A DNA stretch of 64,000 nucleotides from Macrostomum lignano (Eukaryota), in contig NIVC01000629.1 in the NCBI GenBank assembly GCA_002269645.1, forward strand, positions 438,390-502,389, read 5' to 3'. How positions within the stretch are numbered: position 1 is the stretch's first letter; each line of letters starts with the position of its first letter. The notes under the pieces were generated by a model. That model was not told where the DNA came from and searched no databases. It was given only the letters and a program-made list of their open reading frames with translations. Made by a program: the position numbers and the translations under genes. Below are positions 968-64,000 of this stretch, piece by piece.

Positions 968-1426
<459 letters not shown>

Positions 1427-1427
<1 letters not shown>

Positions 1428-4400
1428 TAGATAGCGAGAAAGAGCGAGCGAAGCGAGCTCTTTCGAGCTTGCTTGCCGCAGCCAATCAAGCTGAATGCAC
1501 GCACACAAGATCACCGGAAACGATTAAGGCAGCTGGAAAGCCAATGGGCGCGGTAAGCGCTTTTATCCAGAGGAACTACCTGCTGGAACCAGCCTGCCGT
1601 TCGAAAATCAGACTACTCAAGTAGTGCAAAAGAGTGCGAGCAACTACCGAGAAATCTAATTTTCGTAACCGCTCCGGTGCAGGTCCTGGCAATAGATGGT
1701 AGATAGCGAGAAAGAGCGAGCGAAGCGAGCTCTTTCGAGCTTGCTTGCCGCAGCCAATCAAGCTGAATGCACGCACACAAGATCACCGGAAACGATTAAG
1801 GCAGCTGGAAAGCCAATGGGCGCGGTAAGCGCTTTTATCCAGAGGAACTACCTGCTGGAACCAGCCTGCCGTTCGAAAATCAGACTACTCAAGTAGTGCA
1901 AAAGAGTGCGAGCAACTACCGAGAAATCTAATTTTCGTAACCGCTCCGGTGCAGGTCCTGGCAATAGATGGTAGATAGCGAGAAAGAGCGAGCGAAGCGA
2001 GCTCTTTCGAGCTTGCTTGCCGCAGCCAATCAAGCTGAATGCACGCACACAAGATCACCGGAAACGATTAAGGCAGCTGGAAAGCCAATGGGCGCGGTAA
2101 GCGCTTTTATCCAGAGGAACTACCTGCTGGAACCAGCCTGCCGTTCGAAAATCAGACTACTCAAGTAGTGCAAAAGAGTGCGAGCAACTACCGAGAAATC
2201 TAATTTTCGTAACCGCTCCGGTGCAGGTCCTGGCAATAGATGGTAGATAGCGAGAAAGAGCGAGCGAAGCGAGCTCTTTCGAGCTTGCTTGCCGCAGCCA
2301 ATCAAGCTGAATGCACGCACACAAGATCACCGGAAACGATTAAGGCAGCTGGAAAGCCAATGGGCGCGGTAAGCGCTTTTATCCAGAGGAACTACCTGCT
2401 GGAACCAGCCTGCCGTTCGAAAATCAGACTACTCAAGTAGTGCAAAAGAGTGCGAGCAACTACCGAGAAATCTAATTTTCGTAACCGCTCCGGTGCAGGT
2501 CCTGGCAATAGATGGTAGATAGCGAGAAAGAGCGAGCGAAGCGAGCTCTTTCGAGCTTGCTTGCCGCAGCCAATCAAGCTGAATGCACGCACACAAGATC
2601 ACCGGAAACGATTAAGGCAGCTGGAAAGCCAATGGGCGCGGTAAGCGCTTTTATCCAGAGGAACTACCTGCTGGAACCAGCCTGCCGTTCGAAAATCAGA
2701 CTACTCAAGTAGTGCAAAAGAGTGCGAGCAACTACCGAGAAATCTAATTTTCGTAACCGCTCCGGTGCAGGTCCTGGCAATAGATGGTAGATAGCGAGAA
2801 AGAGCGAGCGAAGCGAGCTCTTTCGAGCTTGCTTGCCGCAGCCAATCAAGCTGAATGCACGCACACAAGATCACCGGAAACGATTAAGGCAGCTGGAAAG
2901 CCAATGGGCGCGGTAAGCGCTTTTATCCAGAGGAACTACCTGCTGGAACCAGCCTGCCGTTCGAAAATCAGACTACTCAAGTAGTGCAAAAGAGTGCGAG
3001 CAACTACCGAGAAATCTAATTTTCGTAACCGCTCCGGTGCAGGTCCTGGCAATAGATGGTAGATAGCGAGAAAGAGCGAGCGAAGCGAGCTCTTTCGAGC
3101 TTGCTTGCCGCAGCCAATCAAGCTGAATGCACGCACACAAGATCACCGGAAACGATTAAGGCAGCTGGAAAGCCAATGGGCGCGGTAAGCGCTTTTATCC
3201 AGAGGAACTACCTGCTGGAACCAGCCTGCCGTTCGAAAATCAGACTACTCAAGTAGTGCAAAAGAGTGCGAGCAACTACCGAGAAATCTAATTTTCGTAA
3301 CCGCTCCGGTGCAGGTCCTGGCAATAGATGGTAGATAGCGAGAAAGAGCGAGCGAAGCGAGCTCTTTCGAGCTTGCTTGCCGCAGCCAATCAAGCTGAAT
3401 GCACGCACACAAGATCACCGGAAACGATTAAGGCAGCTGGAAAGCCAATGGGCGCGGTAAGCGCTTTTATCCAGAGGAACTACCTGCTGGAACCAGCCTG
3501 CCGTTCGAAAATCAGACTACTCAAGTAGTGCAAAAGAGTGCGAGCAACTACCGAGAAATCTAATTTTCGTAACCGCTCCGGTGCAGGTCCTGGCAATAGA
3601 TGGTAGATAGCGAGAAAGAGCGAGCGAAGCGAGCTCTTTCGAGCTTGCTTGCCGCAGCCAATCAAGCTGAATGCACGCACACAAGATCACCGGAAACGAT
3701 TAAGGCAGCTGGAAAGCCAATGGGCGCGGTAAGCGCTTTTATCCAGAGGAACTACCTGCTGGAACCAGCCTGCCGTTCGAAAATCAGACTACTCAAGTAG
3801 TGCAAAAGAGTGCGAGCAACTACCGAGAAATCTAATTTTCGTAACCGCTCCGGTGCAGGTCCTGGCAATAGATGGTAGATAGCGAGAAAGAGCGAGCGAA
3901 GCGAGCTCTTTCGAGCTTGCTTGCCGCAGCCAATCAAGCTGAATGCACGCACACAAGATCACCGGAAACGATTAAGGCAGCTGGAAAGCCAATGGGCGCG
4001 GTAAGCGCTTTTATCCAGAGGAACTACCTGCTGGAACCAGCCTGCCGTTCGAAAATCAGACTACTCAAGTAGTGCAAAAGAGTGCGAGCAACTACCGAGA
4101 AATCTAATTTTCGTAACCGCTCCGGTGCAGGTCCTGGCAATAGATGGTAGATAGCGAGAAAGAGCGAGCGAAGCGAGCTCTTTCGAGCTTGCTTGCCGCA
4201 GCCAATCAAGCTGAATGCACGCACACAAGATCACCGGAAACGATTAAGGCAGCTGGAAAGCCAATGGGCGCGGTAAGCGCTTTTATCCAGAGGAACTACC
4301 TGCTGGAACCAGCCTGCCGTTCGAAAATCAGACTACTCAAGTAGTGCAAAAGAGTGCGAGCAACTACCGAGAAATCTAATTTTCGTAACCGCTCCGGTGC

Positions 4401-5648
4401 AGGTCCTGGCAATAGATGGTAGATAGCGAGAAAGAGCGAGCGAAGCGAGCTCTTTCGAGCTTGCTTGCCGCAGCCAATCAAGCTGAATGCACGCACACAA
4501 GATCACCGGAAACGATTAAGGCAGCTGGAAAGCCAATGGGCGCGGTAAGCGCTTTTATCCAGAGGAACTACCTGCTGGAACCAGCCTGCCGTTCGAAAAT
4601 CAGACTACTCAAGTAGTGCAAAAGAGTGCGAGCAACTACCGAGAAATCTAATTTTCGTAACCGCTCCGGTGCAGGTCCTGGCAATAGATGGTAGATAGCG
4701 AGAAAGAGCGAGCGAAGCGAGCTCTTTCGAGCTTGCTTGCCGCAGCCAATCAAGCTGAATGCACGCACACAAGATCACCGGAAACGATTAAGGCAGCTGG
4801 AAAGCCAATGGGCGCGGTAAGCGCTTTTATCCAGAGGAACTACCTGCTGGAACCAGCCTGCCGTTCGAAAATCAGACTACTCAAGTAGTGCAAAAGAGTG
4901 CGAGCAACTACCGAGAAATCTAATTTTCGTAACCGCTCCGGTGCAGGTCCTGGCAATAGATGGTAGATAGCGAGAAAGAGCGAGCGAAGCGAGCTCTTTC
5001 GAGCTTGCTTGCCGCAGCCAATCAAGCTGAATGCACGCACACAAGATCACCGGAAACGATTAAGGCAGCTGGAAAGCCAATGGGCGCGGTAAGCGCTTTT
5101 ATCCAGAGGAACTACCTGCTGGAACCAGCCTGCCGTTCGAAAATCAGACTACTCAAGTAGTGCAAAAGAGTGCGAGCAACTACCGAGAAATCTAATTTTC
5201 GTAACCGCTCCGGTGCAGGTCCTGGCAATAGATGGTAGATAGCGAGAAAGAGCGAGCGAAGCGAGCTCTTTCGAGCTTGCTTGCCGCAGCCAATCAAGCT
5301 GAATGCACGCACACAAGATCACCGGAAACGATTAAGGCAGCTGGAAAGCCAATGGGCGCGGTAAGCGCTTTTATCCAGAGGAACTACCTGCTGGAACCAG
5401 CCTGCCGTTCGAAAATCAGACTACTCAAGTAGTGCAAAAGAGTGCGAGCAACTACCGAGAAATCTAATTTTCGTAACCGCTCCGGTGCAGGTCCTGGCAA
5501 TAGATGGTAGATAGCGAGAAAGAGCGAGCGAAGCGAGCTCTTTCGAGCTTGCTTGCCGCAGCCAATCAAGCTGAATGCACGCACACAAGATCACCGGAAA
5601 CGATTAAGGCAGCTGGAAAGCCAATGGGCGCGGTAAGCGCTTTTATCC
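1427..5648. repeat. 272-bp tandem array, ~15.5 apparently identical copies
   Basis: Identical 66-aa ORFs recur every 272 bp (1696, 1968, 2240...). No unit variation was seen by eye. The last copy is truncated after GCGCTTTTATCC. Confidence 0.98.
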
Positions 5649-7535
<1,887 letters not shown>

Positions 7536-16808: not shown

Positions 16809-17945
16809 CTGCGAGGACAAAAATAAATTGGGCGCCTGGAAGTCGGTGCGGGTCAGTCAATCGTTCCGACTAGCGGCTGTAATTGGAAGAAAACTTCCAG
16901 ACAGCCAGCGAAATTCTACGAGTGTTGCCCTTTCCCCGCAGGCGCATGCACTTGGCTCTGCAGCTTCATCATCCTCAGCATCATCAATGCGGGAAGTGGC
17001 GCTGACTCTTCAGATTTCAGCTACCGGCCTCTCTGTCTTCACGTGCCAATAAGCTTTGGCATTTTCCCGGCTTCCATCTATCCGTCCGGTAGGGGTGAAG
17101 CAGCGCTCGGCTAGGCCGGTATTTCTACAAGAGAGTTTTTCCCTCCCAGGAAGGAGGCCCAGCGATATTAATCTCCCTTTCCTGGCCAGAGGAAAGTCCA
17201 CAGCAAGTTGCGCGTAAAGCAGCAGCACCAAATAGCGGTGATGCTCTCAGCATACTACTATACACTTACCCATTCCTATAAATGGCAGAATTATTGGTCA
17301 GCAGTTGTTATCTTACCGGGATAAGTTGGCGGCCACTGGGGGAATGGTGCGGATTAAAAGCGCTGCTAGGAGGCTGAAGATTTTACGCAAATTTCGCCCT
17401 CAACCCCCCGCAGGTTCGGGGCCAGTTAGGGAGATCTGCTTTCCTCCTTAGCGGCAGGGCCAGGAAAGAGGAAAGTGCAGCGCAAGACTACAAGCGCACA
17501 ATGAAGCCAATCAAATGTCAGCTGTCAGTGGGCCCCCAAATCCTGAGTGCGAGGATCAAGGATGTTGGAATTGTTTTTTAGCCTCGAAGGATTATTTAAG
17601 ATTTGCTGGTAAATTGATTGCCACCTCGCAAGGCTCGGCAACTACTATTAATGATTTTGCTTTGCCTAGTAATCATTGCCTAGGAATGTCTGAAGCGCTG
17701 CGAAGATATGAGCCAAACCAGAATGGAACACGTAGCCTAAGTGACTCTATAATTTCATGCATAGCAACAGGTGTCCAAGGCGCCACTCCGATGCAAAAAC
17801 ATAACGGTTTTAAGCGACCCGATTGAAGTTCTTCAGGGTCAGCTAATCAATTTGACCTCTCTTCGATCAACCACTGAAAGAACGGGCTCGAAACTGATTC
17901 TTTTTTTAGAAGCGCATTAGACTGAATCGAATCCCAGCTGCTCAC

Positions 17946-20839
17946 CTCATTTCTCAGCTCCATCATTTGCGGCCTGAGCTCGCACGCGCTGCCAGCCTGG
18001 TTGAATGTTGTCAGAGCGAACTGGTGATGATGCGAGCCGTTCGCCGGACCGCCGATCCCGCCGCAGAGCCTGCCGTAGGTTGCCGCTGACTCGGCCTCGT
18101 CGCACTGGCAGCAGCCACCGCCGCCGACTCCGCTGATGTCCTTGTCGCAGCCGACTCCGCAACCGCCCGAGCTGCTGCCGCCAGCCCGACATCCCGGCCC
18201 AGTTGCCATTAAGATGTCCCCGGCTGGCGAGATGTCGTAATCGTTTCCGCGTCCACGACGCCGGACGCAGACGATGGCCAGGACCAGGACCACGCTGATC
18301 ACCGCGGTGGCTATCACCATGGCAACGATGATCGCCAGGTTGGCCTGTGCGTCGCGCAGCTGGCCGATGCCGTGGCCGGGAAGGCGCACCGCGTTGACAA
18401 CCAAGCGGGCGTAGGCCACGCGGTTGATCGGCCCGTTGTCGTCAGCGCGCAGGGACAGCTCGTACCTGCCCGGCTGCGGCGGGCGCAGCGGCCTCAGCCT
18501 GCCGGACAGCCGGTCCAGCGAGAACACTCCACCGGATCCGCCCGCCAGCGAGTAGGTCACGTTGCTGAGCGAATCCCGGTCGCGAGCTTCAACTCGAGTG
18601 ACCTCGACCAGGTCGCTAGAGAAAGTGTAGTTAACCACAAAGTCGGTGTTGCTTGGAAAAACCCATTCGGGATCGTTGTCGTTCTCGTCAACGAGTTCCA
18701 CGGTGATGTGCGCCGTGGAGTTCAGCGGCTGCGGGGCGGCCCGGTTGTAAGCCATGACGGTGAGCGCGAACGATTCATAAGTCTCTCGGTCGAGGTGGCC
18801 GCGACTGGAGATGACGCCGTTCTCGCTGAGGCTAATCGGCCACTGGTTCGGATCGCTGAAGGCCACCTCGGGATCAAGCAGGGACCTGCGCGAGTCCAAG
18901 TAGTCCTTGGCCGGGGGGCGCCTGCCGACCACGGAGAGCAGCCGGTAGAAGACGTCGGCGTTGATGCCCTGGTCCGGGTCCCGGTGAGCCAGTCGGTTCG
19001 CACCGGTTGGCCAGGACAGAGCTGGAGTCTCCATCGGGCAGTTCTCGCGTAGTCGGAACACCAGAGGCGGTTGGATTATCGGGGGATTATCGTTCACGTC
19101 AATCACACTGAGAGTGAGGGTGACGCTGGCGCTGTGCTGCGTGCCGTTGAAGCCTTGGGCGTCCCGCAGAACCACAACGAATTGCATGAGATCCCCGGTG
19201 CTCGGGTCCATCGTGTCTCTGTCTACGGTGGACCGAACTCGCAGCTGCGCCTGGCCGACGGTGGCCGCCAGACCTTCGTCAAACAGCGACGCCTCAGTGC
19301 GCACCTCGAACAGGGCCATCGCCGCTGCGTCTTGCAGCTCGAAAGTCAACGAATCGTCCCTGTCACGATCCGTGGCCATCAGACTGAAGACCGACTCGCC
19401 AATGTTGTTCCCGCTGTTTCCGTACGTCTCCTTCATCGCGTTGAAGTAGTTGGTCACGGAAAACTGCGGCTCGAACTCGTTGACGCCCCTGATGAACACC
19501 GGAACGTTTTGGCTGGAGTTCTGCATCGGCTGGCCAAAGTCGCGACAGTCGATGCGCACGGAGATTTTGCGCCGCTCCTCGTAGTCGACGGCGACAACGA
19601 GCTTGAGGGTGTAGCCACCCTTGTCGCTGCCGTCCAGCTGAAAGAAGCGCCTCTCGGCGGGACTGCCGGCCAGTTTGCATTCGACCCGAGCGTTCTCGCC
19701 CAGATCGTCGTCGGAGACAACCACCAGAGCTAGATAGGCCGGTGCGACGTTTCAGATATCACTATTCGGTCGCTGTTGTCTGTCATCGGTATGATGTTGA
19801 TCGCTGGCTCGTGGTCATTCGCATCGATGACGCGGAAGCTGAACTTGGCCAGAGTGCGCTTGCTGGGGTTGCCACCGTCCGAGACGAGCACCCCGACCTC
19901 GTAGCTGCTGCGAGTCTTCGCGTTCAACGGTCGTCGGAGTGTCACCCGGCCCGCCCGGTCCACGTCTAGCAGGTTGGCTAGTTCCGGGTCCAGGATGGCG
20001 AACTCCAGCCGACCGTTCGACCCGCTGTCCCTATCGTGCGCCTCGATGGTGGCCACCAGACCGCCGATGTTGAGCGTCTCCGGCACGTCCTGCACTCGCA
20101 CCGCCGTCACGTTGGGCGCGTTATCGTTGCGGTCCTTCACCTGCACGATGAGGCGCTGGTGGCCGCAGCGCGGCTCCCGACCGCCGTCGCAGGCAGTGAG
20201 GGTCAGGTTGTACTGTTTCTGCTCCTCGTAGTCAATCACAGGCGGGCTGGTGGGGTTCAGCACCAGGCTCAGGAAGCCCGGGATACTCGTGTCCAGAGCG
20301 AAAGCTCCACCACCGTTGTCAGTGAGGTAGTAGCTGCCCTTCCTCGCCATGCCGTTGTCCCCGATGTCAGCGTCCGTCGCCTGATCAAGCGGATGGCTGA
20401 ACCGGGTGTCGCCCTCCTCGATTGATAGCACCTTCTGTGCGTCCTTGAACACTGGCTCGTTGTCGTTGATGTCCTCGACGGTGATGCGGACCAGGACGCG
20501 GTCGGCTCCGCGAAAGGCGTTAAACTCCACGACGCAGGGTGGCGAACCCAGACAGGCGGCCGGGTCCTCGCGGTCGATGGGCCGGCTGACCCGGACATGG
20601 CCGTCCTTGTCCACCGTGAAGTAGGGCGACTGAGGCACGATTCTGAAGGTGCCACCGCCGCCGCCCAGACTCTTCAAGAGGTTGCCGATGCTGGCCTGGC
20701 TGGGCGTCTCCTCCGCCACGCTGAAGGCAACGTCTGCGGCTGTCCGCACGGGGCTGGGGCGGCCAAGGCTTAGCAGGATGAAGAGGAGAGCAACATCGGA
20801 GCCTGATTTGATGAGGCCGAGAGGCTGAGGCGGTCGCAT
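17946..20839 (-). CDS. Protocadherin (delta-like, 7 cadherin repeats + TM) exon 1; 1-nt frameshift at ~19750
   Basis: Signal peptide, linkers DINDNEP/DRNDNAP/DANDHEP/GVNEFEP/DVNDNPP/DENDNDP, then TM AIIVAMVIATAVISVVLVLAIVCV. Adding one A at GAA-A(A)C joins the ORFs 19730-20839 and 17847-19724 as ISENVAPAYLALVVVSDDD. Phase-0 donor GAG|GTGAGC at 17946. The reconstructed protein is ~1168 aa. Confidence 0.93.
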
Positions 20840-47594: not shown

Positions 47595-49260
47595 GATTTG
47601 GAGGGTGAGAGGGAGATGGAGGGTGAGAGGGAGATGGAAGGTGAGGGGAAATGGAGTGTGAGAGGGAGATGGAGGGTGAGAGGGAGATGGAGGGTGAGAG
47701 GGAGATGGAGGGTGAGAGGGAGATGGAGGGTGAGAGGGAGATGGAGGGTGAGAGGGAGATGGAGGGTGAGAGGGAGATGGAGGGTGAGAGGGAGATGGAG
47801 GGTGAGAGGGAGATGGAGGGTGAGAGGGAGATGGAGGGTGAGAGGGAGATGGAGGGTGAGAGAGAGATGGAGGGTGAGAGGGAGATGGAGGGTGAGAGGG
47901 AGATGGAGGGTGAGAGAGATGGAGGGTGAGAGGGAGATGGAGGGTGAGAGGGAGATGGAGGGTGAGAGGGAGATGGAGGGTGAGAGGGAGATGGAGGGTG
48001 AGAGGGAGATGGAGGGTGAGAGGGAGATGGAGGGTGAGAGGGAGAAGCAGGGTGAGAGGGAGATGGAGGGTAAGAGAGAGATGGAGGGTGAGAGGGAGAT
48101 GGAGGGTGAGAGGGAGATGGAGGGTGAGAGGGAGATGGAGGGTGAGAGGGAGATGGAGGGTGAGAGGGAGATGGAGGGTGAGAGGGAGATGGAGGGTGAG
48201 AGGGAGATGGAGGGTGAGAGGGAGATGGAGGGTGAGAGGGAGATGGAGGGTGAGAGGGAGATGGAGGGTGAGAGGGAGATGGAGGGTGAGAGAGAGATGG
48301 AGGGTGAGAGGGAGATGGAGGGTGAGAGGGAGATGGAGGGTGAGAGAGATGGAGGGTGAGAGGGAGATGGAGGGTGAGAGGGAGATGGAGGGTGAGAGGG
48401 AGATGGAGGGTGAGAGGGAGATGGAGGGTGAGAGGGAGATGGAGGGTGAGAGGGAGATGGAGGGTGAGAGGGAGAAGCAGGGTGAGAGGGAGATGGAGGG
48501 TAAGAGAGAGATGGAGGGTGAGAGGGAGATGGAGGGTGAGAGGGAGATGGAGGGTGAGAGGGAGATGGAGGGTGAGAGGGAGATGGAGGGTGAGAGGGAG
48601 ATGGAGGGTGAGAGGGAGATGGAGGGTGAGAGAGAGATGGAGGGTGAGAGGGAGATGGAGGGTAAGAGAGAGATGGAGGGAGAGGGAGATGGAGGGTGAG
48701 AGTGAGATGGAGGGTGAGAGAGATGGAGGGTGAGAGGGAGATGGAGGGTGAGAGGGAGATGGAGGGTGAGAGTGAGATGGAGGGTGAGAGAGATGGAGGG
48801 TGAGAGGGAGATGGAGGGTGAGAGGGAGATGGAGGGTGAGAGAGAGATGGAGGGTGAGAGAGAGATGGAGGGTGAGAGAGAGATGGAGGGTGAGAGGGAG
48901 ATGGAGGGTGAGAGGGAGGTGGAGGGTGAAAGGGAGGTGGAGGGTGAAAGGGAGGTGGAGGGTGAGAGGGAGGTGGAGGGTGAGAGGGAGGTGGAGGGTG
49001 AGAGGGAGGTGGAGGGTGAGAGGGAGGTGGAGGGTGAAAGGGAGGTGGAGGGTGAAAGGGAGGTGGAGGGTGAGAGGGAGGTGGAGGGTGAAAGGGAGGT
49101 GGAGGGTGAGAGGGAGGTGGAGGGTGAGAGGGAGGTGGAGGGTGAAAGGGAGGTGGAGGGTGAAAGGGAGATGGAGGGTGAAAGGGAGGTAGAGGGTGAA
49201 AGGGAGGTGGAGGGTGAAAGGGAGGTGGAGGGAGAGAGGGAGATTGAAGTTGAGAGGGAG
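47595..49260. repeat. 18-bp minisatellite (GAGGGTGAGAGGGAGATG) with an internal 430-bp duplication
   Basis: The variant GGGAGAAGCAGGGT occurs at ~48041 and ~48471. Units drift to GGAGGTG at the right end. Confidence 0.96.
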
Positions 49261-50064
49261 ATGGAAGGGAAGAGGGAGATAGCGATTGATAAGGGTGAGA
49301 GAAGATTGAGAAAGAGAGAGAGAGGAGATGGAGAAGGAGAAGAGGATTTAGAGATGCAGCAAAGGCTAAGAGAGCCAGCAGACAGCGGTTGCCGGCGGTG
49401 CCCTCACCAGAAAAGTACCCCTGTCCCCCCTGTCCCAACCGCGGAAGCCGGCGCGTCACAGAGAGAAATCGAGAAAGAATGAGAGAAGAAAGTTCAAACA
49501 CTTCAGCAGCCGGAGGCTGGCCCGTCCCGCCCACCAATTCAGCCCCCCCCCCGCGGGGCACTCCATCATCTCAAAGTCCTCAATTTTTACCCCCCCCCTA
49601 TCCGGAGAGGCTGGGCGCGGAAAGGAGATGACGATCTGCCCGAGTCGCGATTTGAGGAGGTCTCGAATACCCTCCGGTCATGGCAGCCCGGGCGTGGAAG
49701 TGGAAAATAGGGGGGGGGGTGGAGGGTATGGGATATCTTCCCAGCTAGCGGCTCAATTAGGCAGAGCTTCTGAATTGCGGCAAAAATCTAAGAAAAACTG
49801 CTCACCGACATTGGCTGAGTAAATCTGCGCGCGCCTAAGTGGGATGGAAGTTTGATTTATTTTTAATTCTTCTTTGTCTTAATTCCTTCCCGCATCAGTT
49901 CTTTGTACGAGTACTTCGCGTCTCTTATTGCGACGTCAATTTCAGTTAATCACATATTCTCTCCTCTTAGATTCTTCCTGAAGCTCATCTTTTCCCATCT
50001 GAGTCACACCTATCACCGGTTGCACCTGAATCTCATTTCTGTCTGTCTGTCTCTCTCTCTCCAT

Positions 50065-54480: not shown

Positions 54481-55032
54481 GTTAGTAACAAAGTAAAATC
54501 CAAAGCTCAAAAAATGGCAACCCCGCCGTAAAAATTCAGTGTTTTATGGCGTCGCGGCCAGCTCGGGTCACCGACATTTTATACCGACACCCTGCATGCC
54601 CAGCCAGTGATGCTAGTGGGGAGGGATAATATTAACCCGAGTGGTATGATGCCGAATTTGGTTTTGTTGCCACTTAAGATCCCAGAGGGAGGAAGATTAA
54701 AGTATTTGGTAACTTACTCTGGTGCTAGCGCTATAGCAAGAGATTAGTACCGTACTACATAACACTGTACGCCTTACAAACTGCTTTTAAGATAAAAAGG
54801 TCAGCTGAGGTCGTCAATTTCACAGAGATCTTTACTAAAACGGCCGCACGGGGAATGCCAATAAATTTGACGACAAATCCATACACTAAAAATGGTCTGT
54901 CGGTAGGTATGTGTGTGATCGATTTAAGAAAAAATTGTCACTTAAACTGTCAATTAAATGAGGCTAACTTTGTTTTTCTTGGAATTCCTAATAGGCTGTA
55001 ACTTATTTTGTTACGAACTTCTAAGCTGACAG

Positions 55033-55750
55033 GGAATCACTCAGATGCCAATGGTCATGAGGAATCACTCAGATGCCAATGGTCATGAGGAATCACTCAG
55101 ATGCAATGGTCATGAGGAATCACTCAGATGCCAATGGTCATGAGGAATCACTCAGATGCCAATGGTCATGAGGAATCACTCAGATGCCAATGGTCATGAG
55201 GAATCACTCAGATGCCAATGGTCATGGGAATCACTCAGATGCTATGCATGGCTCATGGGAATCACTCAGATCAGTGTCAGATGCCAATGGTCATGGGGAA
55301 TCACTCAGATGCCAATGGTCATGAGGAATCACTCAGATGCCAATGGTCATGAGGAATCACTCAGATGTCAATGGTCATGAGGAATCACTCAGATGCCAAT
55401 GGTCATGGAGAATCACTCAGATGCCAATGGTCATGGGGAATCACTCAGATGCCAATGGTCATGGGGAATCACTCAGATGCCAATGGTCATGGGGAATCAC
55501 TCAGATGCCAATGGTCATGGGGAATCACTCAGATGCCAATGGTCATGGGGAATCACTCAGATGCCAATGGTCATGGGGAATCACTCAGATGCCAATGGTC
55601 ATGGGGAATCACTCAGATGCCAATGGTCATGGGGAATCACTCAGATGCCAATGGTCATGGGGAATCACTCAGATGCCAATGGTCATGTGGAATCACTCAG
55701 ATGCCAATGGTCATGGGGAATCACTCAGATGCTAATGGTCATGGGGAATT
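55033..55750. repeat. 28-bp minisatellite (GGAATCACTCAGATGCCAATGGTCATG(G/A))
   Basis: About 25 tandem copies. Confidence 0.95.
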
Positions 55751-57092
55751 ACTCAGCTGCCAAGCATGTGACAAAGGTTTAACATAGAATATCTCATATG
55801 AAATGAACTGAAAGGCAAAGACTGATAGCTAAATTTAATAGAAAAACGTGTTAGAATTGAATTGCTTGTGAAGTGATTTAGCTTTTTTCGTTGTTTTATT
55901 TTCATTTTCACATCATTTTAAACTTTAGGCTTTAGAAGATAGCAAATTACTGTAAAAAGAATGAAGTTTCGAGACTGACAGTAAACTGTTATAACTAAAT
56001 ATTTTGCTTGCTTATCAAACACACCAAAATATGATGAATAATTTAAAGAAGCTTTCATTTCTATAAATTGTAAAAATGGCAAACGTGGAGGTTAAAGAAT
56101 AGACACAGTAAAATACTCGTAGAAAACACTTTTTAGAACAAAACTATGAAAATTGAAAATATAAGGTTGAACCAAAACTGAATGAAAATTGTTTTTAAAA
56201 AATAAATGTTTAAAACGGGCCATACTACTTTCAGTAACAAAAATTGAAATTAATGACAAGACTATCGTTTTTTACTCCCGAGTTCTCGATATATACTACT
56301 AACTGCAAGCCAATGCAAACCAGTCCTTAAAGAGTAGTTACTCGTACTACAAATTGAGACAAATGTCAATGCCTCAATTTGTCTATGGCCAAACCCATTC
56401 AGTGCTTTGCGTTCTCTAAGAGTGTTTTTTCGGTGAAGCCTCCTATAGTGTCGAGTTCTTTTCGTATCGTTTCCCAATCTAGTTCAACAAAACCTCCCAA
56501 TATGAAATTTCCTCATTCCATTCCATCTTTAGAGCACAACCAAAAGTTTCTATTTTTACGCAAGCTTTATTCAGTCATTTGGGCAACATTCTTCAATCTG
56601 TACGAGTACTTCTAATGCGCAACACAAGAGACAACCTTAATGTGTGAAAATCTCAAGCAGTCACCGAATATTCAACTTGGCACTTTAGGTCAACTTCAGC
56701 CTTCGCTCTTTGATTTTATTTCAGCCTATCTCTTTTTGGCCTGTTTATTAGATAAGTTTTAAGAAATTTCTGCTCGATTGTACATATTTTGACTGCTTTC
56801 AATTAGAAGAAGTACATAAAGAAAAGTGTTATGACTATGCTGTCGAAATAGTATTATGCTTGTATAGTTTAGATTTGAGCTTTGCCCCAATTCCTTACTT
56901 CTCCTTCCTGTCTAAATGGAAATGTTAAATATGGTGTTCTAAAATGGAATGACGCAATTTCAGTTTTCTGTACTACTTAAGTTTTTCAGCTCTCTGTCTG
57001 GTCTGGTAATGTCTGGTAATGATCAAATTAAGAAAAAACTGACTTAATTGCTGTTGTTTAAAACTCGCCTTAACTCGAATACAATACAGCCG

Positions 57093-57691
57093 TCACTGCG
57101 TGAACTTTATAGTCGTGAACACTCGATAGACAGGCAAAATTTGGTCCGGATTCGAAATCACCAGCATATTGGAGTAGTCGGAACTGCTGTCCCTAACTCG
57201 GACACAGTCGTACTCGGCCGGTTTATTAGGAGGCGGAGGATAATCCACTTCTCGACCTGGCAGCACTCTGCACAGCAACAAGGCATCTCCGTAATCCTTG
57301 GAGATATGCGTGAACTCGGAGAAATAAATGCCTCTACGTAGGCCTGGCGGGTGCACTTGTCCAGACGGAAGTTCTCCTTGAAGATCTGGTCGGCGCTGTT
57401 CCTGTTAGTACCGTGAAAGGCGTACACCCAGCAATCGCTGTTGTACTTATTGCGAAATTCTTCCTGCTTTGCTTTGAACTTTTGCTCGAGCTGGGCATTT
57501 CGATTGACCCACACCTCTGTGATGCTGCCCAGCGATTTGATGGTGCCGTCGATTCGCAAGTACTCCGACTGTACGGAGGCAAAGTGAAGAGCTTTGCAGC
57601 TGTCGCTGTCCGTCTTGTACCTGTCTGGCCTGATTTTCAATACGTGATTCTCTGCGCTAGGCGGCAAAGACATCACAGCAGTTCTGCAAGG
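57093..57691 (-). CDS. Second PARP-like ADP-ribosyltransferase domain (ART2), probably the C-terminus of the ZNFX1-like protein; 1-nt frameshift at ~57337
   Basis: Motifs: ITEVWVNRNAQLEQKF, YAFHGT, then (one G restored) QAYGRGIYFSE, LLLCRVLPG, NMLVISNPDQILPVY. Stop TGA at 57093-57095. Confidence 0.82.
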
Positions 57692-60600
57692 TTTGAATAG
57701 TGAATGACGTATTGAGGCACGGCTTGACGAGGATCAAAGATCACGTATTCATCAAAGAGGACACCGCCGGTAGATTTGGTGTTGCGCGGAGCGAAGAGCG
57801 AATCGTAGCCAATCTTTTTTAAATCCGCGTGCGACTTGTACATTTGTGTTGCCGAAGTAACTTTCAAGGTTCGTCCAATAAGCACTTCACAAAGCAGTAG
57901 CATGTTCGAGCCCTTCGTGTAGATCTGCTGGCTGCTCTTAGACGAATTGGTGGCAAAGTAAATTCCAGGACCGTACATTCCAGCCTTGGAAGGCAGTTTA
58001 AAGCCGTCAGTTACAATGCTATGCAGTGCGTTAGCAGAGGTACCATGAAACTTCTTCTCGCTTCGTCGTGGATCAGCCGCGCACTTGGCTTTGAAGTCCA
58101 GAAACTGCAGAGTTAGCTTTGAATTTTCGATTTTCTCTATTTTCGTAATAGCTGGATGCCATCCGTGCTCTGACTGAATGAACTTCATAACTCGATCGTG
58201 CACATCAAGGTACTCATCGCAGTAATCACCATCGCAGCTTATAGTCTTAACACTTGAAGGTAAGTCTTTCATCGCTCTGATTTTTTTCAGCTCTTCAAAA
58301 GCGTTTCTTCGAATAGCCTGTTGCAGCTCAAGTAGCTGTTTTTTCTCGATTTCTGATTGAATACTGGCACAGACTTTACACTTCTCTGAATTGCACGGCT
58401 GATAGCACTGCAGCAGACATTTGTGACCACATCCCTCTAGCTGCTTGTTGCAAATCTTCTTGCATTTGACTTGACTCTCCGGGATAGAGCATTCGATTTC
58501 AGCGGGATGAGCGCACGGCAGTATAAGCTTGATTTTTACTTGACAAGCGATAGACGCGCAGTCAGCGGAGCAGGTGCCCGGGCAGCTGTGACCGCAAGCA
58601 AGTTTACGCTCGCACTTGGCATCGCACACGAATTGCTGGTCGCTCATGCAGCAGGGTACTTTAATGCTATGCTCACAGTTTGGATATTTAACAGTTGTTT
58701 GGACAAAGCACGGTTTAAGCTTGCAATCTTCACCGCACTTCAGTGTGCAGGGATGATTACATGGCAGCTTTCGGCTGCACGGTTGCTGACATGTCATTAC
58801 GTCTCTGTTTTCGCAACACTGAGTATTGATTGTGTGCCCACAAGGAAATCGGTGCGGAACTTTTTCCTTACACGGACGACTGGAGCAGAGCTCGAAGCAC
58901 TTCAGAAGACATTTGTGACCGCAGTTTAAAAGTCTCTCGCATTTTTCGTGACATTTATAAAAACTATCTGGCATTCCGCACTCCTTCAATATCTCGTGTG
59001 AACACTCGGTAAACTTCATAGAAACTTTCGTCTTGCAGGTTTTCACACCGATTGGCTCACTGCAAAACTTCGTATCATTATGGTTGCACAACGGATGAAC
59101 GAATGGAACAACGACCTTGCAATTGTCGTGCTCTTGATCGTGCGGTGGCTGACAAGGAAGCAAGCACGAATGAATGCCGCAAGACATTTGAATGCCGCAA
59201 ACCTCCAAGCAGAATGGCGACATAGTGGGAATTTGATCGAAGCTCTCTGATTGCACGACACTTTGCGCATGATTAGGGCAGCGCAGTGAAATCTTTGATC
59301 CGATGCAGTTCGAGCCCTTCATCGCATCAATTAGAGGTCGCCAGACTTTTCCATTCGGACTGTCGTAGATACAGTCAGCATTGCCAATGAAGACCATGAC
59401 CAACCTGGCTCTGGATTGAGCCACGCAGCGTCGATTGAGCGTTTTAAGAAAGCCGATGTTGTTGGAAGGATTCGAGCGAACTAGTGACACGATAACTATG
59501 TCATTTTCGTCACCTTGATACAGATCGATTGTGAAAATCTTCACGGACAAGTCAGCTTCAGTGACGACAGTGTTGGATTGTTCCGTTGGCGATTCAGTTA
59601 ACTCTAGATCTTCGCAGTTCCGTTTCGAACGATGTTGAATTAGAATACGCAGGAAGTCGGATTTGGCTAAGAAGTCCTTAAAAAGGTTTCGGATTAGACC
59701 AGTTTGGCGTCTGTAGGCTGATAATATTGTGATTCGATCGGGATCGCAGCCTTGGAGGATGAGAAACATAGCGAGGCGGACGCAGCGCTGCGCCTCTTCC
59801 ATGTTAGTCGCTCCATGGCCACCGGAGGTGGATTCAAGCTCTCGGTGCGTCCAGAAAAACGTGGGCACAGTGAAGCACCTAGGCTGGAGATCTCGTGAAA
59901 CAACTTCTAGATTGTCGCGCAAGTTCGGATATATATCTCTTAGTAGAATACTGAGCTCCGGCTTCATGCGGCTCTGCAGCTCCAGTTGGTCGTACTTAAT
60001 GCCATTGGCAATGAGCCGCTCCATCATCGACACGTCTAGATGGTAATCCTTTGCCAATTTGTAGCTCTCAGTCTGCGGCCTGAGCTGCTTGTGGTCCCCG
60101 ATCAAAATCAGTTGCTCCGTTCTGTGCCCAAAGCAGGCAAGTAGATGCGGCTCGGATACCTCGGCCGCCTCTTCTACAAGCAGCACTCCTGGCTGTACAA
60201 GGTCGAGCAGCTCTCTGTGAATTGAGGCGCCCGTGATGGTCATGCCGATAATGCGCCTGCGCCGAAGTATTGAAGCGTCCGCTTTTACTTCAAGCAGTCT
60301 CTTTTCACTTTCGAGTCGCTGAATAGTGTCGAACTGCTCTTTAATGTCACTTCGGATTTTGCTGATTGCCTTGTACAGGGCCTGTTGAAAGTACAGCAGC
60401 TGTTCAGTTGGCGACAGCCTTGTTGGATTCCGCCGGCTCAACTGAGCAATCACGCCAGAGTTGCAACAATTCTCAATTCCTGGATCATGAAGAATTTGGG
60501 AACCATTGGTGTTGTCAAGGTTGATTCTGTCTATTAAATTGGACTTGCCGCCACGCTCAGTTTGAGAGTCTCTGCTCGCCAATGATGCCAGAATCTGGTT

Positions 60601-61317
60601 TTCTCTCTCCTTAACTTCTTCCTCCTCGGCATCGTCTAAAGACGCCTTGGCAACTGTTTTTGCTGGCTGAGAACTAGAGTTAGAACATGATGGGGCTGCT
60701 GGAACGTTGGTATGAACAGAACTTTTCTGCGCTTTCTTTTGGTTAGCCTCCAGCTGATCCTTGATGGCAGGCATTGAATGGTCAACGCAAGCTGCGAGAG
60801 CGGCGAGCACTTTGGCGTCAGAGCGGATTAGATCATGCAGTTCATCTTTAGACGCACGCTTAAATTTTTCTTCAACCTCCAACTCTTCTGGCGTCATTTG
60901 CTTAATAGACGATTTTCGATTTCTATGCCTGACAAGTTCAGCCAAGTATGTCTCGTTGCATTCATCCATAATGGCTACTGCTGGGTGAGAGAAGAGGCAG
61001 TCCAGCTCCTTCACACTGTCTTTAAATTTGGCCCAAGCTTCTTCAATCTCAGAGCTGATGGTTCGCAGAGACTTTGCTCTTCCTCGATCCGGGCACTTCC
61101 GCCGCAATTCAATCAAGTTTAAATGCTCCAGCCTAAGATCCTTGCATCTACCGCCGATTCTGACAATGTCCTCTTGGTGTTCTGGAAGCAAGTGAGACAG
61201 AAATTCGTCCAAAGCGTGATTCTTGTAGCACAGAACCAGAATCGGCCGATCCTTGAGTACGTCGAGCTCAAGCAGCTGACGGGCTATGAGAACTCCAAGC
61301 AGAGTCTTGCCAGTGCC
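57673..61317 (-). CDS. znfx1: ZNFX1-like Upf1/SF1 helicase + NF-X1-type Zn fingers + coiled coil + PARP catalytic domain (ART1)
   Basis: Helicase motifs GTGKT, CYKNHALD, IIGMTITGA, VEEAAE, IGDHKQLRP, QSRM, SAYRRQ, TIDLYQGDENDIVIVSLVRSN, NRRCVAQSRAR (~61340-59330). Repeated C-x3-L-x-C-G-H-x-C fingers at ~59280-58370. PARP motifs FHGT / GMYGPGIYFA / LLLCEVLIG / DEYVIFDPRQAVPQYVIHY at ~58230-57700. Confidence 0.92.
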   Translation of the reverse strand, partial: GTGKTLLGVLIARQLLELDVLKDRPILVLCYKNHALDEFLSHLLPEHQEDIVRIGGRCKDLRLEHLNLIELRRKCPDRGRAKSLRTISSEIEEAWAKFKDSVKELDCLFSHPAVAIMDECNETYLAELVRHRNRKSSIKQMTPEELEVEEKFKRASKDELHDLIRSDAKVLAALAACVDHSMPAIKDQLEANQKKAQKSSVHTNVPAAPSCSNSSSQPAKTVAKASLDDAEEEEVKERENQILASLASRDSQTERGGKSNLIDRINLDNTNGSQILHDPGIENCCNSGVIAQLSRRNPTRLSPTEQLLYFQQALYKAISKIRSDIKEQFDTIQRLESEKRLLEVKADASILRRRRIIGMTITGASIHRELLDLVQPGVLLVEEAAEVSEPHLLACFGHRTEQLILIGDHKQLRPQTESYKLAKDYHLDVSMMERLIANGIKYDQLELQSRMKPELSILLRDIYPNLRDNLEVVSRDLQPRCFTVPTFFWTHRELESTSGGHGATNMEEAQRCVRLAMFLILQGCDPDRITILSAYRRQTGLIRNLFKDFLAKSDFLRILIQHRSKRNCEDLELTESPTEQSNTVVTEADLSVKIFTIDLYQGDENDIVIVSLVRSNPSNNIGFLKTLNRRCVAQSRARLVMVFIGNADCIYDSPNGKVWRPLIDAMKGSNCIGSKISLRCPNHAQSVVQSESFDQIPTMSPFCLEVCGIQMSCGIHSCLLPCQPPHDQEHDNCKVVVPFVHPLCNHNDTKFCSEPIGVKTCKTKVSMKFTECSHEILKECGMPDSFYKCHEKCERLLNCGHKCLLKCFELCSSRPCKEKVPHRFPCGHTINTQCCENRDVMTCQQPCSRKLPCNHPCTLKCGEDCKLKPCFVQTTVKYPNCEHSIKVPCCMSDQQFVCDAKCERKLACGHSCPGTCSADCASIACQVKIKLILPCAHPAEIECSIPESQVKCKKICNKQLEGCGHKCLLQCYQPCNSEKCKVCASIQSEIEKKQLLELQQAIRRNAFEELKKIRAMKDLPSSVKTISCDGDYCDEYLDVHDRVMKFIQSEHGWHPAITKIEKIENSKLTLQFLDFKAKCAADPRRSEKKFHGTSANALHSIVTDGFKLPSKAGMYGPGIYFATNSSKSSQQIYTKGSNMLLLCEVLIGRTLKVTSATQMYKSHADLKKIGYDSLFAPRNTKSTGGVLFDEYVIFDPRQAVPQYVIHYSNLAELL

Positions 61318-62034
61318 GGCGGACCCTGACACACGTAGATTCGCCTGTGCAAAGCGTTTTCAAATGCGCTGGTCTGGCACACGTCCAGTTTCAGACTGCC
61401 AGTAGAAATGAACGGCAACTTTTCAGCGCAGTAGTCAACATCGTCTGGATCGCCTTCATAGTGCCGCTTCACGTACAAAGGCTGAGCGTCGGCCGCCGTC
61501 ATGTCGCCAAACACCAGCGAATCAGCAAACGGAAACCTCTCCGCGTCAAAGCATTTCAGACTCTCCAGAACCGGTTCGAACGCGCGGAACATAGTTGGCG
61601 ATTCGAGCATAATTAAACCGTTAGAAGCGCGAGTTGAGTTTAGCATAAGACTGACTAGCACATCCCCAGCCGAGGTGTCCGGGCTGCACATGTACTGGCA
61701 CAGGTCGAGCCACACTAGCCGGCTGCTGTTCAGATCCTGGCTGTCCCTGTCAGCTACTGTGGCCCAGTACTGCTCAGAGAATCGCTCACTGGTTGCTAGG
61801 CACAGAAGATTACCAGTCATTAGTCGCATAGACTTTGCCCAATTACTAGGCGCGTGGTCGGAATCTCGCAGCTCAAATGTTACGCCAATGCTGCAAGAGC
61901 CACTCTTGCTTAGCTTAACAGATTTAACCTTCACGTTGCAGTACACTCTGATGTCCTCATTCCGGATCTCACTGCCCGACTTCACCTGCTCCATGCACTC
62001 GTAGAATTTTTCAAAGCAGTCTGCTCGCAACAGC
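61318..62034 (-). CDS. znfx1: ZNFX1-like pre-helicase region (start of the large exon)
   Basis: Acceptor CTTGTTTTCAG|G at 62035/62034. Encodes RLLRADCF, WAKSMRLMTGNLLCL, LESPTMFRAFEPVL, FPF, LDVCQTSAFENAL. Restoring one G at 61316-61317 gives the Walker A QGPPGTGKT. Confidence 0.88.
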
Positions 62035-62292
62035 CTGAAAACAAGGTGCGAAAAGTGGAAGTGGGTGTTTAGTAATTTTAACAGTAGGAATACCAAGCTA
62101 TTTTTCTTCCCGTCCAACTACCATGCTCCTTGACAATATTTTTGCTGAGCCGGAACACACGAAAGGCACTCGAAATTCAAGAAAACTGGCTAAATATATG
62201 TTGCACACCTTCTCAAACTAGAATCAAGTCGCCAGCTCTCTGCATCGTCGAGATATTCAACGATTCTGCCAAAATGTCGGATTTTTCGTGAA

Positions 62293-62539
62293 CGTCGACC
62301 TTGTGTCTGCATCAGCTGACTTAGTTGGTCAGTGGCCACAGTCATTCACCCAGACGGAGTTTCTGGACCATCAACAGTTGGCAGCAGGTGACTATGGACA
62401 CCATATTTCAAATTTCTGTGATGTCTCTGATCAAGCCTCGACTGCTAGGTATCCTCAATTAGTCTCTCAGACATTCAGTCGTCATCCAGATGCCAATAAC
62501 CAACGAAGTCAGAGCTGATGCAGACACATGCTGTCGACG
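62293..62539. mobile_element. MITE-like element A (~35-bp terminal inverted repeats)
   Basis: Left CGTCGACCTTGTGTCTGCATCAGCTGACTTAGTTGG; right CCAACGAAGTCAGAGCTGATGCAGACACATGCTGTCGACG. Confidence 0.6.
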
Positions 62540-62562
62540 CGGTGTTGAATTAGGGGGTCCAT

Positions 62563-63039
62563 GAGAATTGCCCGCCGAGGTTTGCATTTCGCCACGCGGC
62601 AGATTCTGTCTGCATCCCCCCCCCAATGTTTAGTAATTCTTAATAAAGAGATTTACCCGATGAAAACGCTTAGATAGCAACTGCATATCAAATTATGTTT
62701 TTCTTGTAAGTATTCAGTTCTATACATATACAGAACTGTACATCTGTGAGCTATTGGTTCATGCATATGCCATGTCACTTCCCCCCCCCAAATCTCTTTA
62801 TTAAGACTTACGCGGTACTAAGAATTGGGGGGGGGAGGCAATGCAAAAAAATCTGCCGCATGGCAAAATGCACTGTAGAAAAAAAGCATTGCGCAAACCT
62901 CGGTGAGCAATTCGCTCGCGGGCAAAGTGCACTTGCGGGCAAAGTGCACTTGCGGGAAAATTGCACTGCGGGCAATTCGGTCACGGGCAAAATGCACTTC
63001 GGCCAAATCTCAACGGTAGAAGCTCGGCGGGCAAATCTC
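62563..63039. mobile_element. MITE-like element B (17-bp TIR GAGA(A/T)TTGCCCGCCGAG, subterminal GCGGGCAAAGTGCACTT repeats)
   Basis: The TIRs are at 62563-62579 and 63023-63039, with short tandem repeats at ~62918-63000. Confidence 0.6.
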
Positions 63040-63524
63040 GAAGGCCGCACCGAGGCGCCGTGCTAGAATACACTAGCGCTTATCGGAAAAATTAGACTTT
63101 CGGGCAGAATCGTTGAATATCTCGACGGTGCAGAGACTTGATTGTTGTTTGAGACGGTGCGCAACAATTATTTAGCCTGTGTCCTTGAATTTCGTAGTTC
63201 TACTGTTAATCAGTCAGATCAAGGCTCCGACCTAATAGTGTGACACTACTTCGCAAATACTAATCTCAATACATTAAAAATCCAGAACTCAACGTGGAAT
63301 CCAAGCCTACAGATAGGTCCCGATTCCGAAATCGCAGAGTTTAAACAGCTGAACCAGGTGTCGCAGCGTTCACGCTGAGCTGCTCTGGTCCAATTACAGA
63401 GCTTTTTAAAGACCTACGTATCCAGCTCTCAAGTCTCAGAAATTGGTCTTAAAATAGCTCATAAAAGATTGTCAAGATCTCAAGAACCCTGATCCCACAA
63501 TGTCTGAATCCACAAAAAACCTAC

Positions 63525-63881
63525 CTGAACATAGTCTCGAAGTAGTCCTCCACGGACTGGTACGTCCTTGGATCCTCGCAGGTTGCAAGACCGGTCAGCA
63601 TGGACTTCCTGCCCGCCGACACCTCCTCGCTGTGGGCGCGATGCTGATGGACCTCCGGCCACCAGGTCGGAGCTCTGCCACCGCCGTCAACAAATCCAAC
63701 AACAGGCTGTTGCTAGGCGCAGTGGCTCCTTTTAGTAACGGCAGCAGGCGAGCCAAACAGCCGGTCCTGGGCAAGGAGGCTTCGAGCAAATTCGACTACG
63801 ATTCGGCGATGAGACATCGGAGCGTCTGGAGACTGGGCTGCATCGGCTGCACCAGCGCAACAGCAGGCGAGACAATGCCTT
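63525..63881 (-). CDS. znfx1: Upstream ZNFX1-like exon (contains at least one indel; gene probably continues beyond the window)
   Basis: Ends SISIAPTA(+G)EEV...TYQSVEDYFETMF-AG|GTAGG. The phase-2 splice to 62034 rebuilds YFETMFRLLRADCF, which matches the ZNFX1 Y-x-S-V-x-x-Y...FRLLREDF motif. Acceptor ACTTTGCAG| at 63882. The frame of the 5' half is unresolved. Confidence 0.75.
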
Positions 63882-64000
63882 CTGCAAAGTAGTACAAAGT
63901 AGTAGCTATTGTTTAGAGGGGCAGGAGAGGCCTGAGAGACCTATGATAGGGGTAGCAGTCGGTCAGAACCGGAACATGAACACATGAGGGTCCATGAAAG

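Follow-up and report, generated by a model that had tools for sequence, protein, structure and literature searches.

A 64,000-nucleotide stretch of the Macrostomum lignano genome (assembly GCA_002269645.1, contig NIVC01000629.1, positions 438,390 to 502,389; hereafter the window) carries near its end a copy of the gene Mlig016543, which encodes a ZNFX1-like RNA helicase joined to two PARP-type ADP-ribosyltransferase (ART) domains. We judge it likely that this is a real and probably functional gene of an ancient metazoan ZNFX1-like clade, with tandem ARTs in the place where vertebrate ZNFX1 has an E3 ligase. The intact protein, of about 1970 amino acids, is organized from its N-terminus as an ARM-like region, a ZNFX1 domain, a superfamily 1 (SF1) helicase, a finger stalk, a linker, ART1 and ART2. 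Positions given below are those of the window, all features of the gene lie on its minus strand, and residue numbers are those of g1, a full-length copy of the gene elsewhere in the genome.

ART1 (57679..58218; residues about 1596-1775) matches the PARP catalytic domain (PF00644; E 2.7e-22, 79.7 bits) and has an H-Y-E triad. Its closest solved structures are tankyrases 1 and 2 (E 3e-11). The His, Tyr and Glu of ART1 align with the catalytic triad, the Glu matching the catalytic Glu of tankyrase, and an alignment gap stands in place of the zinc-binding loop of tankyrase. The triad is conserved in homologues (H in 116, Y in 119 and E in 116 of 119). ART2 (57096..57678; residues about 1776-1970) is a PARP-type domain with an H-Y-M triad, and the solved structures closest to it are ZAP (E 4e-4) and PARP12 (E 0.02). 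The His, Tyr, Ser and Tyr of the NAD+ pocket are present in ART2, with Met at the third triad position. In homologues, the H-G-T, Y, S and Y are invariant (104 of 104), and the third triad residue is M in 50, E in 28, I in 10 and A in 8. PF00644 is found in two stretches of full-length g1 (110 bits). The weak score of ART2 in the raw window (17.4 bits) is due to frameshifting, as described below.

A structure model of ART1-ART2, beginning after the linker, was computed with AlphaFold2 from a 24-sequence alignment. It shows two folded domains joined by a low-confidence connecting linker, with a mean predicted local distance difference test (pLDDT) score of 81.6 and a predicted template modelling (pTM) score of 0.68. 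Most of ART1 has pLDDT values of 80-96, and the block means of the ART2 core are mostly about 75-93. Foldseek searches with the whole model, in which hits were not assigned to ART1 or ART2 individually, returned tankyrase at the top (TM score 0.76), followed by PARP4, PARP1 and PARP10 (E about 1e-12 to 1e-13). A Pfam scan of g1 detected neither ankyrin (Ank) nor SAM domains and nothing besides PARP after the fingers, and zf-CCCH and WWE had no matches at E<=1 in the full-length copy. To judge from these comparisons, the protein has two conserved ART domains with predictedly competent NAD pockets, on one chain with a ZNFX1-type helicase. An earlier note, made from the letters of the window, had read the locus as a single chain ending in two PARP-type ARTs, and intact paralogous copies and more than 100 homologues bear this out. 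The Pfam families AAA_11, AAA_12 and PARP (PF00644), which that note had proposed to look for, were also recovered, the second PARP domain being seen on the full-length copy.

The helicase-ART design is widespread. Among the best 120 homologues in a 90%-clustered protein database, 119 have ART1, the exception being a truncated M. lignano paralogue, and at least 104 have the ART1-ART2 tandem, including an M. lignano paralogue of 43% identity. Named members come from a sponge (Sycon ciliatum), cnidarians (Dendronephthya, Xenia, Paramuricea, Rhopilema, Clytia and Hydractinia) and horseshoe crabs (Limulus and Tachypleus). Together with the flatworm protein, these indicate that the ZNFX1-ART clade is ancient in Metazoa. 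The Hydractinia homologue (2119 amino acids) was found on 14 independent Logan contigs of 6.4-7.0 kb, the length of a full transcript. Many homologues, including those of Limulus and Hydractinia, carry one or two N-terminal cold-shock domains (PF00313), which the M. lignano protein lacks; this domain is an additional module for binding RNA or single-stranded DNA. In Sycon ciliatum XP_065186319.1 (2484 amino acids), the helicase and ART1-ART2 occur in the same order and are followed by about 350 more residues. The members bear automatic names such as 'NFX1-type zinc finger-containing protein 1-like' or, in UniRef, 'Poly [ADP-ribose] polymerase'. The view of the design as a rarity of this genome was thus mistaken, as it is common and automatically annotated from Sycon to Tachypleus. 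It had also been considered that the architecture might already be common and annotated in ZNFX1 orthologues. This is so at the level of databases, but the proteins concerned form a sister clade and are not vertebrate ZNFX1 orthologues.

The helicase belongs to the ZNFX1 family, as had been proposed. The best match among solved structures is human ZNFX1 (9q9z; E 9e-87, 295 bits over three stretches, residues 272-1342), and the alignment spans the Y..T.FRLLRxD motif and the helicase and runs into the first fingers. Other SF1 helicases score lower (UPF1/NAM7 about 90 bits, with E 1e-24 for UPF1, and aquarius about 68 bits), and the ZNFX1 domain PF25396 is present. A HMMER search of 1.84 billion representatives with the helicase and fingers as query yielded 1972 clusters at E<=1e-30; among the 122 new representatives listed, 35 have ARTs and 87 do not. 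A helicase tree, which the earlier note had suggested, was computed by neighbour-joining on the RecA2 core (254 sequences, 291 columns, merged match stretches, the helicase matches of ART-less proteins being split). One bipartition places all 171 ART-bearing sequences together with one of the 61 ART-less sequences on one side and the other 60 ART-less sequences on the other. An ART-less representative scores 750 bits against human ZNFX1, compared with 295 bits for the M. lignano protein. Because of this clean bipartition and the difference in score, the ART-bearing proteins are considered a distinct sister clade, probably of early-metazoan age, and not orthologues of vertebrate ZNFX1. Both marks of canonical, vertebrate-type orthology are indeed lacking in the M. 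lignano protein: it has no C-terminal Miz-like plus RZ module, and its helicase groups elsewhere in the tree. In a Pfam scan of 24 ART-less ZNFX1-like representatives, the helicase, ZNFX1 domains and one cold-shock domain were found, and no other effector was recognized. Since the helicases separate cleanly and human ZNFX1 ends in an E3 ligase module, the ART tandem appears to be an alternative effector of ancient origin on the ZNFX1 chassis.

The N-terminal part of the protein, about 340 residues of g1, has no Pfam match and occupies the position of the ZNFX1 ARM domain. It is followed, upstream of the helicase, by the ZNFX1 domain (PF25396; 61695..61964, residues 347-436), which scores 60.7 bits in the window against a cut-off of 27 (E 1.5e-16; E 2.2e-15 on full-length g1). 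The N-terminal half of the helicase (AAA_11; 60070..61388, residues 539-978) comprises RecA1 and an insertion of about 215 residues, and the C-terminal half (AAA_12, RecA2; 59377..60039, residues 989-1209) has a Pfam E-value of 9.2e-30; both halves exceed the Pfam thresholds. A motif scan found the helicase motifs II (EEAAE), III (GDHKQ), V (TIDLYQGDE) and VI (RRCVAQSR) intact, motifs II and III lying at the C-terminal end of the AAA_11 stretch. The Walker A motif GPPGTGKT (61325-61303, residues 560-567) is intact after a one-nucleotide repair, the window copy being broken by a single deletion in a G run at about 61316-61318. The alignment with human ZNFX1 is interrupted at this insertion, which coincides in position with the regulatory insertion of that protein.

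After the helicase lies a Cys-rich zinc-finger array (58369..59286, residues about 1240-1545) with five relaxed NFX1-type repeats (CGHxCxxxCxxxC...). The finger region contains 50 Cys and 16 His in 345 residues, and a regular-expression search gave five relaxed and no strict matches to the NFX1-type pattern. The first 100 or so residues of the array align to the finger stalk of human ZNFX1 (9q9z), and the array is a probable equivalent of that rigid stalk. The long NF-X1 array of the earlier note therefore stands as a Cys-rich region with relaxed repeats and a ZNFX1-like beginning, but not as a recognized Pfam family, since zf-NF-X1 and zf-RZ gave no matches even at E<=1 in the full-length copy. 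A short charged linker of about 35-40 residues (58249..58368; SIQSEIEKKQLLELQQAIRRNAFEELKKIRAMKD), which appears helical by eye, connects the fingers to ART1; it is the stretch that the earlier note had called a coiled coil.

In the window, the gene is represented by four minus-strand open reading frames (ORFs) that lie end-to-end between 62117 and 57093. ORF 61284-62117 carries the ZNFX1 domain, ORF 57673-61332 (1219 amino acids) carries AAA_11, AAA_12 and the PARP domain of 79.7 bits, and ORFs 57158-57676 (a weak N-terminal half of a PARP domain) and 57093-57356 are the two halves of the second PARP-like domain. The first break, at about 61317, falls within Walker A, giving GPP/ALARL in place of GPPGTGKT. 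The second, a one-nucleotide deletion at about 57678, cuts ART2 off from ART1 at their junction, where ART1 terminates as ...AELL-TGA and the following frame begins within the stop codon. The third, at about 57337, breaks ART2 internally, between ...RQAY and RGIYFSEF. The addition of one base at each of these sites yields a single frame of 1647 codons and a stop (62033-57093), as the earlier note had found with its three single-base repairs. This is the last exon (exon 3; 57093..62034, with the TGA stop at 57095-57093), and it codes for the ZNFX1 domain, helicase, finger array, linker, ART1 and ART2. The outer coordinate of the note, 63881, proved to be the first base of a real upstream exon. 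This exon 2 (63525..63881 within the window, about residues 205-323 of the full-length copy) was located by tblastn with homologues and PAA69504.1; its product belongs to the ARM-like region at the N-terminus and finishes with the conserved motif Y..T.FR/LLR.D. An intron of about 1.49 kb (62035..63524) with GT..AG ends (donor CAG/GTAGGT, acceptor TTTTCAG/G) separates the two exons, and its splicing gives ETMFR/LLRADCFEKF, as in PAA69504.1. The ATG is in the first exon, which is located past base 64000 (at about 6342 of the related locus L001, introduced below). Therefore, the window contains the 3' five-sixths or so of the gene.

The Mlig016543 family has at least four genomic copies, g1 to g4. 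The best protein match of the window copy is BOX15_Mlig016543g4 (100% identity), encoded on contig NIVC01004868.1 (locus L001). L001 and window 64000-47097 are 99.75% identical over 16.9 kb, with 6 mismatches and 34 gap openings. PAA69504.1 (g1, 1970 amino acids, contig NIVC01001317.1, locus L002) belongs to the same 90% cluster and is intact from the first residue through ART2. Thus, an intact protein is encoded by the genome whatever the status of the window copy. All three last-exon frameshifts are one-nucleotide deletions relative to L001 in GG or CC runs, and neither L001 nor L002 is broken at any of these sites. L001 has a private one-nucleotide deletion of its own, at window position 61191, because of which its gene model is N-terminally truncated. 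Exon 2 of the window copy needs six more repairs in a three-way alignment with L001 and L002 (63858, 63851, 63765 of 2 nt, 63633, 63588 of +1, and 63565), and L001 equals L002 at every one of these sites. The window copy thus has nine private indels in about 5.3 kb of coding sequence, each of 1-2 nt and in C, G or T runs of 2-4 nt. The flanking intron and upstream non-coding sequence show indel-only differences, as in the coding part. Over 4941 nt, the repaired window exon aligns without gaps to g1 at 99.27% identity and differs from it by 36 substitutions. The substitutions are 20 synonymous and 16 non-synonymous, corresponding to a ratio of non-synonymous to synonymous rates (dN/dS) of 0.22. 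The final 670 or so codons, which encode the C-terminal portion of the finger array together with the linker and the two ARTs, are free of non-synonymous changes.

L001 and L002 belong to assembly Mlig_3_7, which was built with Canu from PacBio reads and polished with Pilon, RNA-seq reads being used besides genomic reads, and which contains 180 Mb of duplicated blocks at >=95% identity (PMC5730564). Its GenBank gene models derive from a genome-guided RNA-seq transcriptome (PMC5730564), and the transcript-derived model g1 runs as a single chain from helicase to ART2. The public annotation of the window contig gives a 1098-residue protein (MDECNETY...AELL; 57673-61002) that is cut at both ends by indels, a case of gene models being shortened by residual PacBio indels in duplicated parts of the M. 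lignano assembly. The six substitutions between the window and L001 are clustered in 270 bp (60601-60868), with none beside indels elsewhere. All six are A/G transitions, and L001 equals g1, the more distant copy, at five of them. The cluster resembles a gene-conversion tract or a mosaic consensus of near-identical copies, and polishing with RNA-seq reads could also have brought variants of other copies into this region.

Several points weigh against the reading of Mlig016543 as a functional helicase-ART gene of an ancient clade. The neighbour-joining tree is without support values and includes redundant sequences, and it is only by its alignment position that the helicase insertion is a candidate counterpart of the human autoinhibitory insertion. 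An H-Y-E triad is no guarantee of poly- or even mono-ART activity, and ART2 could be a regulatory pseudo-enzyme. Furthermore, the window copy could be a very young pseudogene, recently inactivated while other copies such as g1 are functional: it has nine private indels, the family of at least four copies could tolerate one loss, and the contig annotation offers just the truncated product. We nonetheless regard a pseudogene as unlikely. The indels are of 1-2 nt, lie in C, G or T runs and are unaccompanied by substitutions relative to L001 outside the 60601-60868 cluster, the intron and upstream non-coding sequence share the indel-only pattern, L001 has a different indel, and dN/dS is 0.22. Since the indels are private, lie in homopolymer runs, follow the same pattern in the flanks and come with few private substitutions, the frameshifts are most likely uncorrected PacBio assembly errors. 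The indel-only pattern in non-coding sequence is itself the behaviour of sequencing errors. Short-read polishing is weak in duplicated regions, and the indels of the window point to residual long-read error there. The gene at the window copy is therefore probably functional, in line with the suspicion of the earlier note that its frameshifts are repairable artefacts. Another possibility is that two proteins are made from the raw sequence: one comprising the helicase and ART1, with the TGA at 57673-57675 as its stop, and a separate ART2 translated from the overlapping ATG (ctgTGATGtct), as in operon-like junctions. This is hardly credible. Both other copies carry one extra C and read through (AELPVMSLPP), ART1 and ART2 are on one chain in more than 100 homologues from four phyla, and ART2 alone would still be frameshifted at about 57337. 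The overlapping-gene interpretation of the TGATG junction was accordingly rejected, as the two other copies and all homologues read through it.

With the gene taken as real, the question of what its ARTs do admits two further alternatives. One is that ART1 alone is catalytic and that ART2 is a non-catalytic domain for NAD+ or ADP-ribose binding or for scaffolding, similar to that of ZAP. Among solved structures, ART2 is most closely related to the ZAP domain, which is inactive, and the third triad position varies among M, E, I and A. Unlike in ZAP, however, the NAD+ pocket of ART2 has kept its His, its Ser and its two Tyr in 104 of 104 homologues, and triads of the H-Y-(I/L/M) type belong to active mono-ARTs in PARP10, PARP12 and PARP14. 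We hold this alternative to be doubtful, albeit one to be taken seriously. The other is that the output is an abortive-infection-like depletion of NAD+ in place of target modification. Two predicted NAD+-using domains on an RNA sensor would fit such an output, and immune responses in bacteria and in TIR/SARM1 systems commonly act by depleting NAD+. PARP-type ARTs, however, are transferases with weak hydrolase activity, and no sign of NADase specialization is seen in the sequence, making this output improbable.

For the preferred reading, in which the ARTs modify targets, RNA-triggered ADP-ribosylation may be envisaged by analogy with human ZNFX1. The helicase would bind RNA, and binding would relieve autoinhibition, promote oligomerization, or both, as in human ZNFX1. 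The finger stalk would keep the ART tandem close to the bound ribonucleoprotein, where ART1, and probably also ART2, would use NAD+ to ADP-ribosylate its own chain, nearby proteins or RNA ends. Such ADP-ribosylation might mark or silence the RNA-containing particle, either in antiviral defence or in the silencing of transposons through small RNAs. Tentatively, and with less than even confidence, we suggest that ZNFX1-ART proteins may be an early-metazoan branch, so far undescribed, of immunity or silencing based on RNA sensing, in which RNA recognition by the helicase would be coupled directly to ADP-ribosylation of proteins, possibly also of RNA ends, by two ARTs. The two-ART module would be the functional counterpart of the bi-catalytic E3 ligase of vertebrate ZNFX1, with vertebrates, insects and nematodes having kept the E3-type or an effector-less version. 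Deficiency of human ZNFX1 causes severe immunodeficiency and inflammation. If the suggestion is true, the helicase-stalk chassis is a general sensor platform on which different effectors were mounted early in animal evolution, and a helicase-based RNA sensor joins the antiviral PARPs, the known ones of which use CCCH, macro or WWE modules. As M. lignano, Hydractinia and Clytia are genetically tractable, the idea is testable.

Recent work on human ZNFX1 established that it is an RNA helicase and that, by way of a rigid stalk of fingers, it drives an E3 ligase located at its C-terminus (bioRxiv 10.1101/2025.10.14.682297). It consists of an ARM dimeriser, an autoinhibited helicase, the rigid stalk and a bi-catalytic E3 (Miz-like plus RZ), and it polymerises (bioRxiv 10.1101/2025.10.14.682297). 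The M. lignano protein resembles it in the position of the ARM-like N-terminus, the Y..T.FRLLRxD motif, the ZNFX1 domain, the Upf1-like SF1 helicase with motif II EEAAE and a large insertion, the Cys-rich fingers after the helicase, and an enzymatic C-terminal effector, the activity being predicted in the case of the ARTs. However, its C-terminus is an ART tandem instead of a Miz-like plus RZ E3 ligase, its finger array is shorter and unrecognized by Pfam zf-NF-X1, and its helicase falls in the sister clade. C. elegans ZNFX-1 and S. pombe Hrr1, which are helicases of small-RNA inheritance and silencing, are by description members of the same helicase family, and neither is known to have ART domains. 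Unlike human ZNFX1, C. elegans ZNFX-1 lacks the RZ domain (bioRxiv 10.1101/2025.10.14.682297).

Both by sequence and by fold, tankyrases 1 and 2 are the closest relatives of ART1, which has the Glu of its H-Y-E triad at the catalytic position, but the M. lignano protein has no ankyrin repeats, SAM domain or tankyrase zinc-binding loop. ZAP (PARP13) and PARP12, the nearest relatives of ART2, are antiviral proteins that likewise combine an RNA-binding module with a C-terminal PARP-type domain. They use CCCH fingers and WWE for RNA, whereas the M. lignano protein has a helicase and neither of these modules, and each has a single ART, that of ZAP being inactive, whereas the M. lignano protein has two. 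The helicase core (residues 538-1230, window about 61390-59315) also matches the PADLOC model of MkoA (E 1.3e-44), the SF1 RNA helicase of the bacterial anti-phage system Mokosh. MkoA is a sensor helicase of an immune system, a setting also proposed for the M. lignano protein, but it comes from prokaryotes and lacks a ZNFX1 domain, a finger stalk and an ART, and a kinship with Mokosh beyond the helicase was rejected, the likeness being that of the generic SF1 core only.

The gene itself is not new, as GenBank has contained the M. lignano protein from the 2017 assembly onwards. No account of a ZNFX1-PARP fusion came up in full-text literature searches, which did not cover the dedicated survey of ZNFX1 in Metazoa (Blasi et al. 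2022). The architecture is not mentioned in the eLife 2021 paper of the Aravind laboratory or in a paper on ZAP evolution, and the study of human ZNFX1 does not mention PARP domains (bioRxiv 10.1101/2025.10.14.682297). The gene is thus already public under automatic names, and its ZNFX1-PARP architecture is one for which no description in the literature was found.

Positions 1-56000 of the window are dense with micro- and minisatellites (e.g. 1420-5648, 5665-7535, 47599-49280 and 55032-55763), including a 272-bp satellite (15.5 copies, 99% identity), 1.9 kb of (TAGA)n, an 18-mer in 94 copies and a 28/56-bp repeat. Such satellites account for the strong GC-skew blocks and for most of the long 'ORFs' (e.g. 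MPMVMGNHSDANGHGESLRCQWSWGITQ repeats, 55337-55787). Two adjacent minus-strand ORFs of 625 and 369 amino acids (17847-20839) contain multiple cadherin domains (Pfam 1e-27 and 5e-25) and are probably parts of one protocadherin/FAT-like gene, unrelated to the ZNFX1-ART gene. Outside the window, L001 carries at positions 1-1430 a gene for a protein kinase (Pkinase / PK_Tyr_Ser-Thr), which shares the strand of the ZNFX1-ART gene and is located about 5 kb upstream of it.

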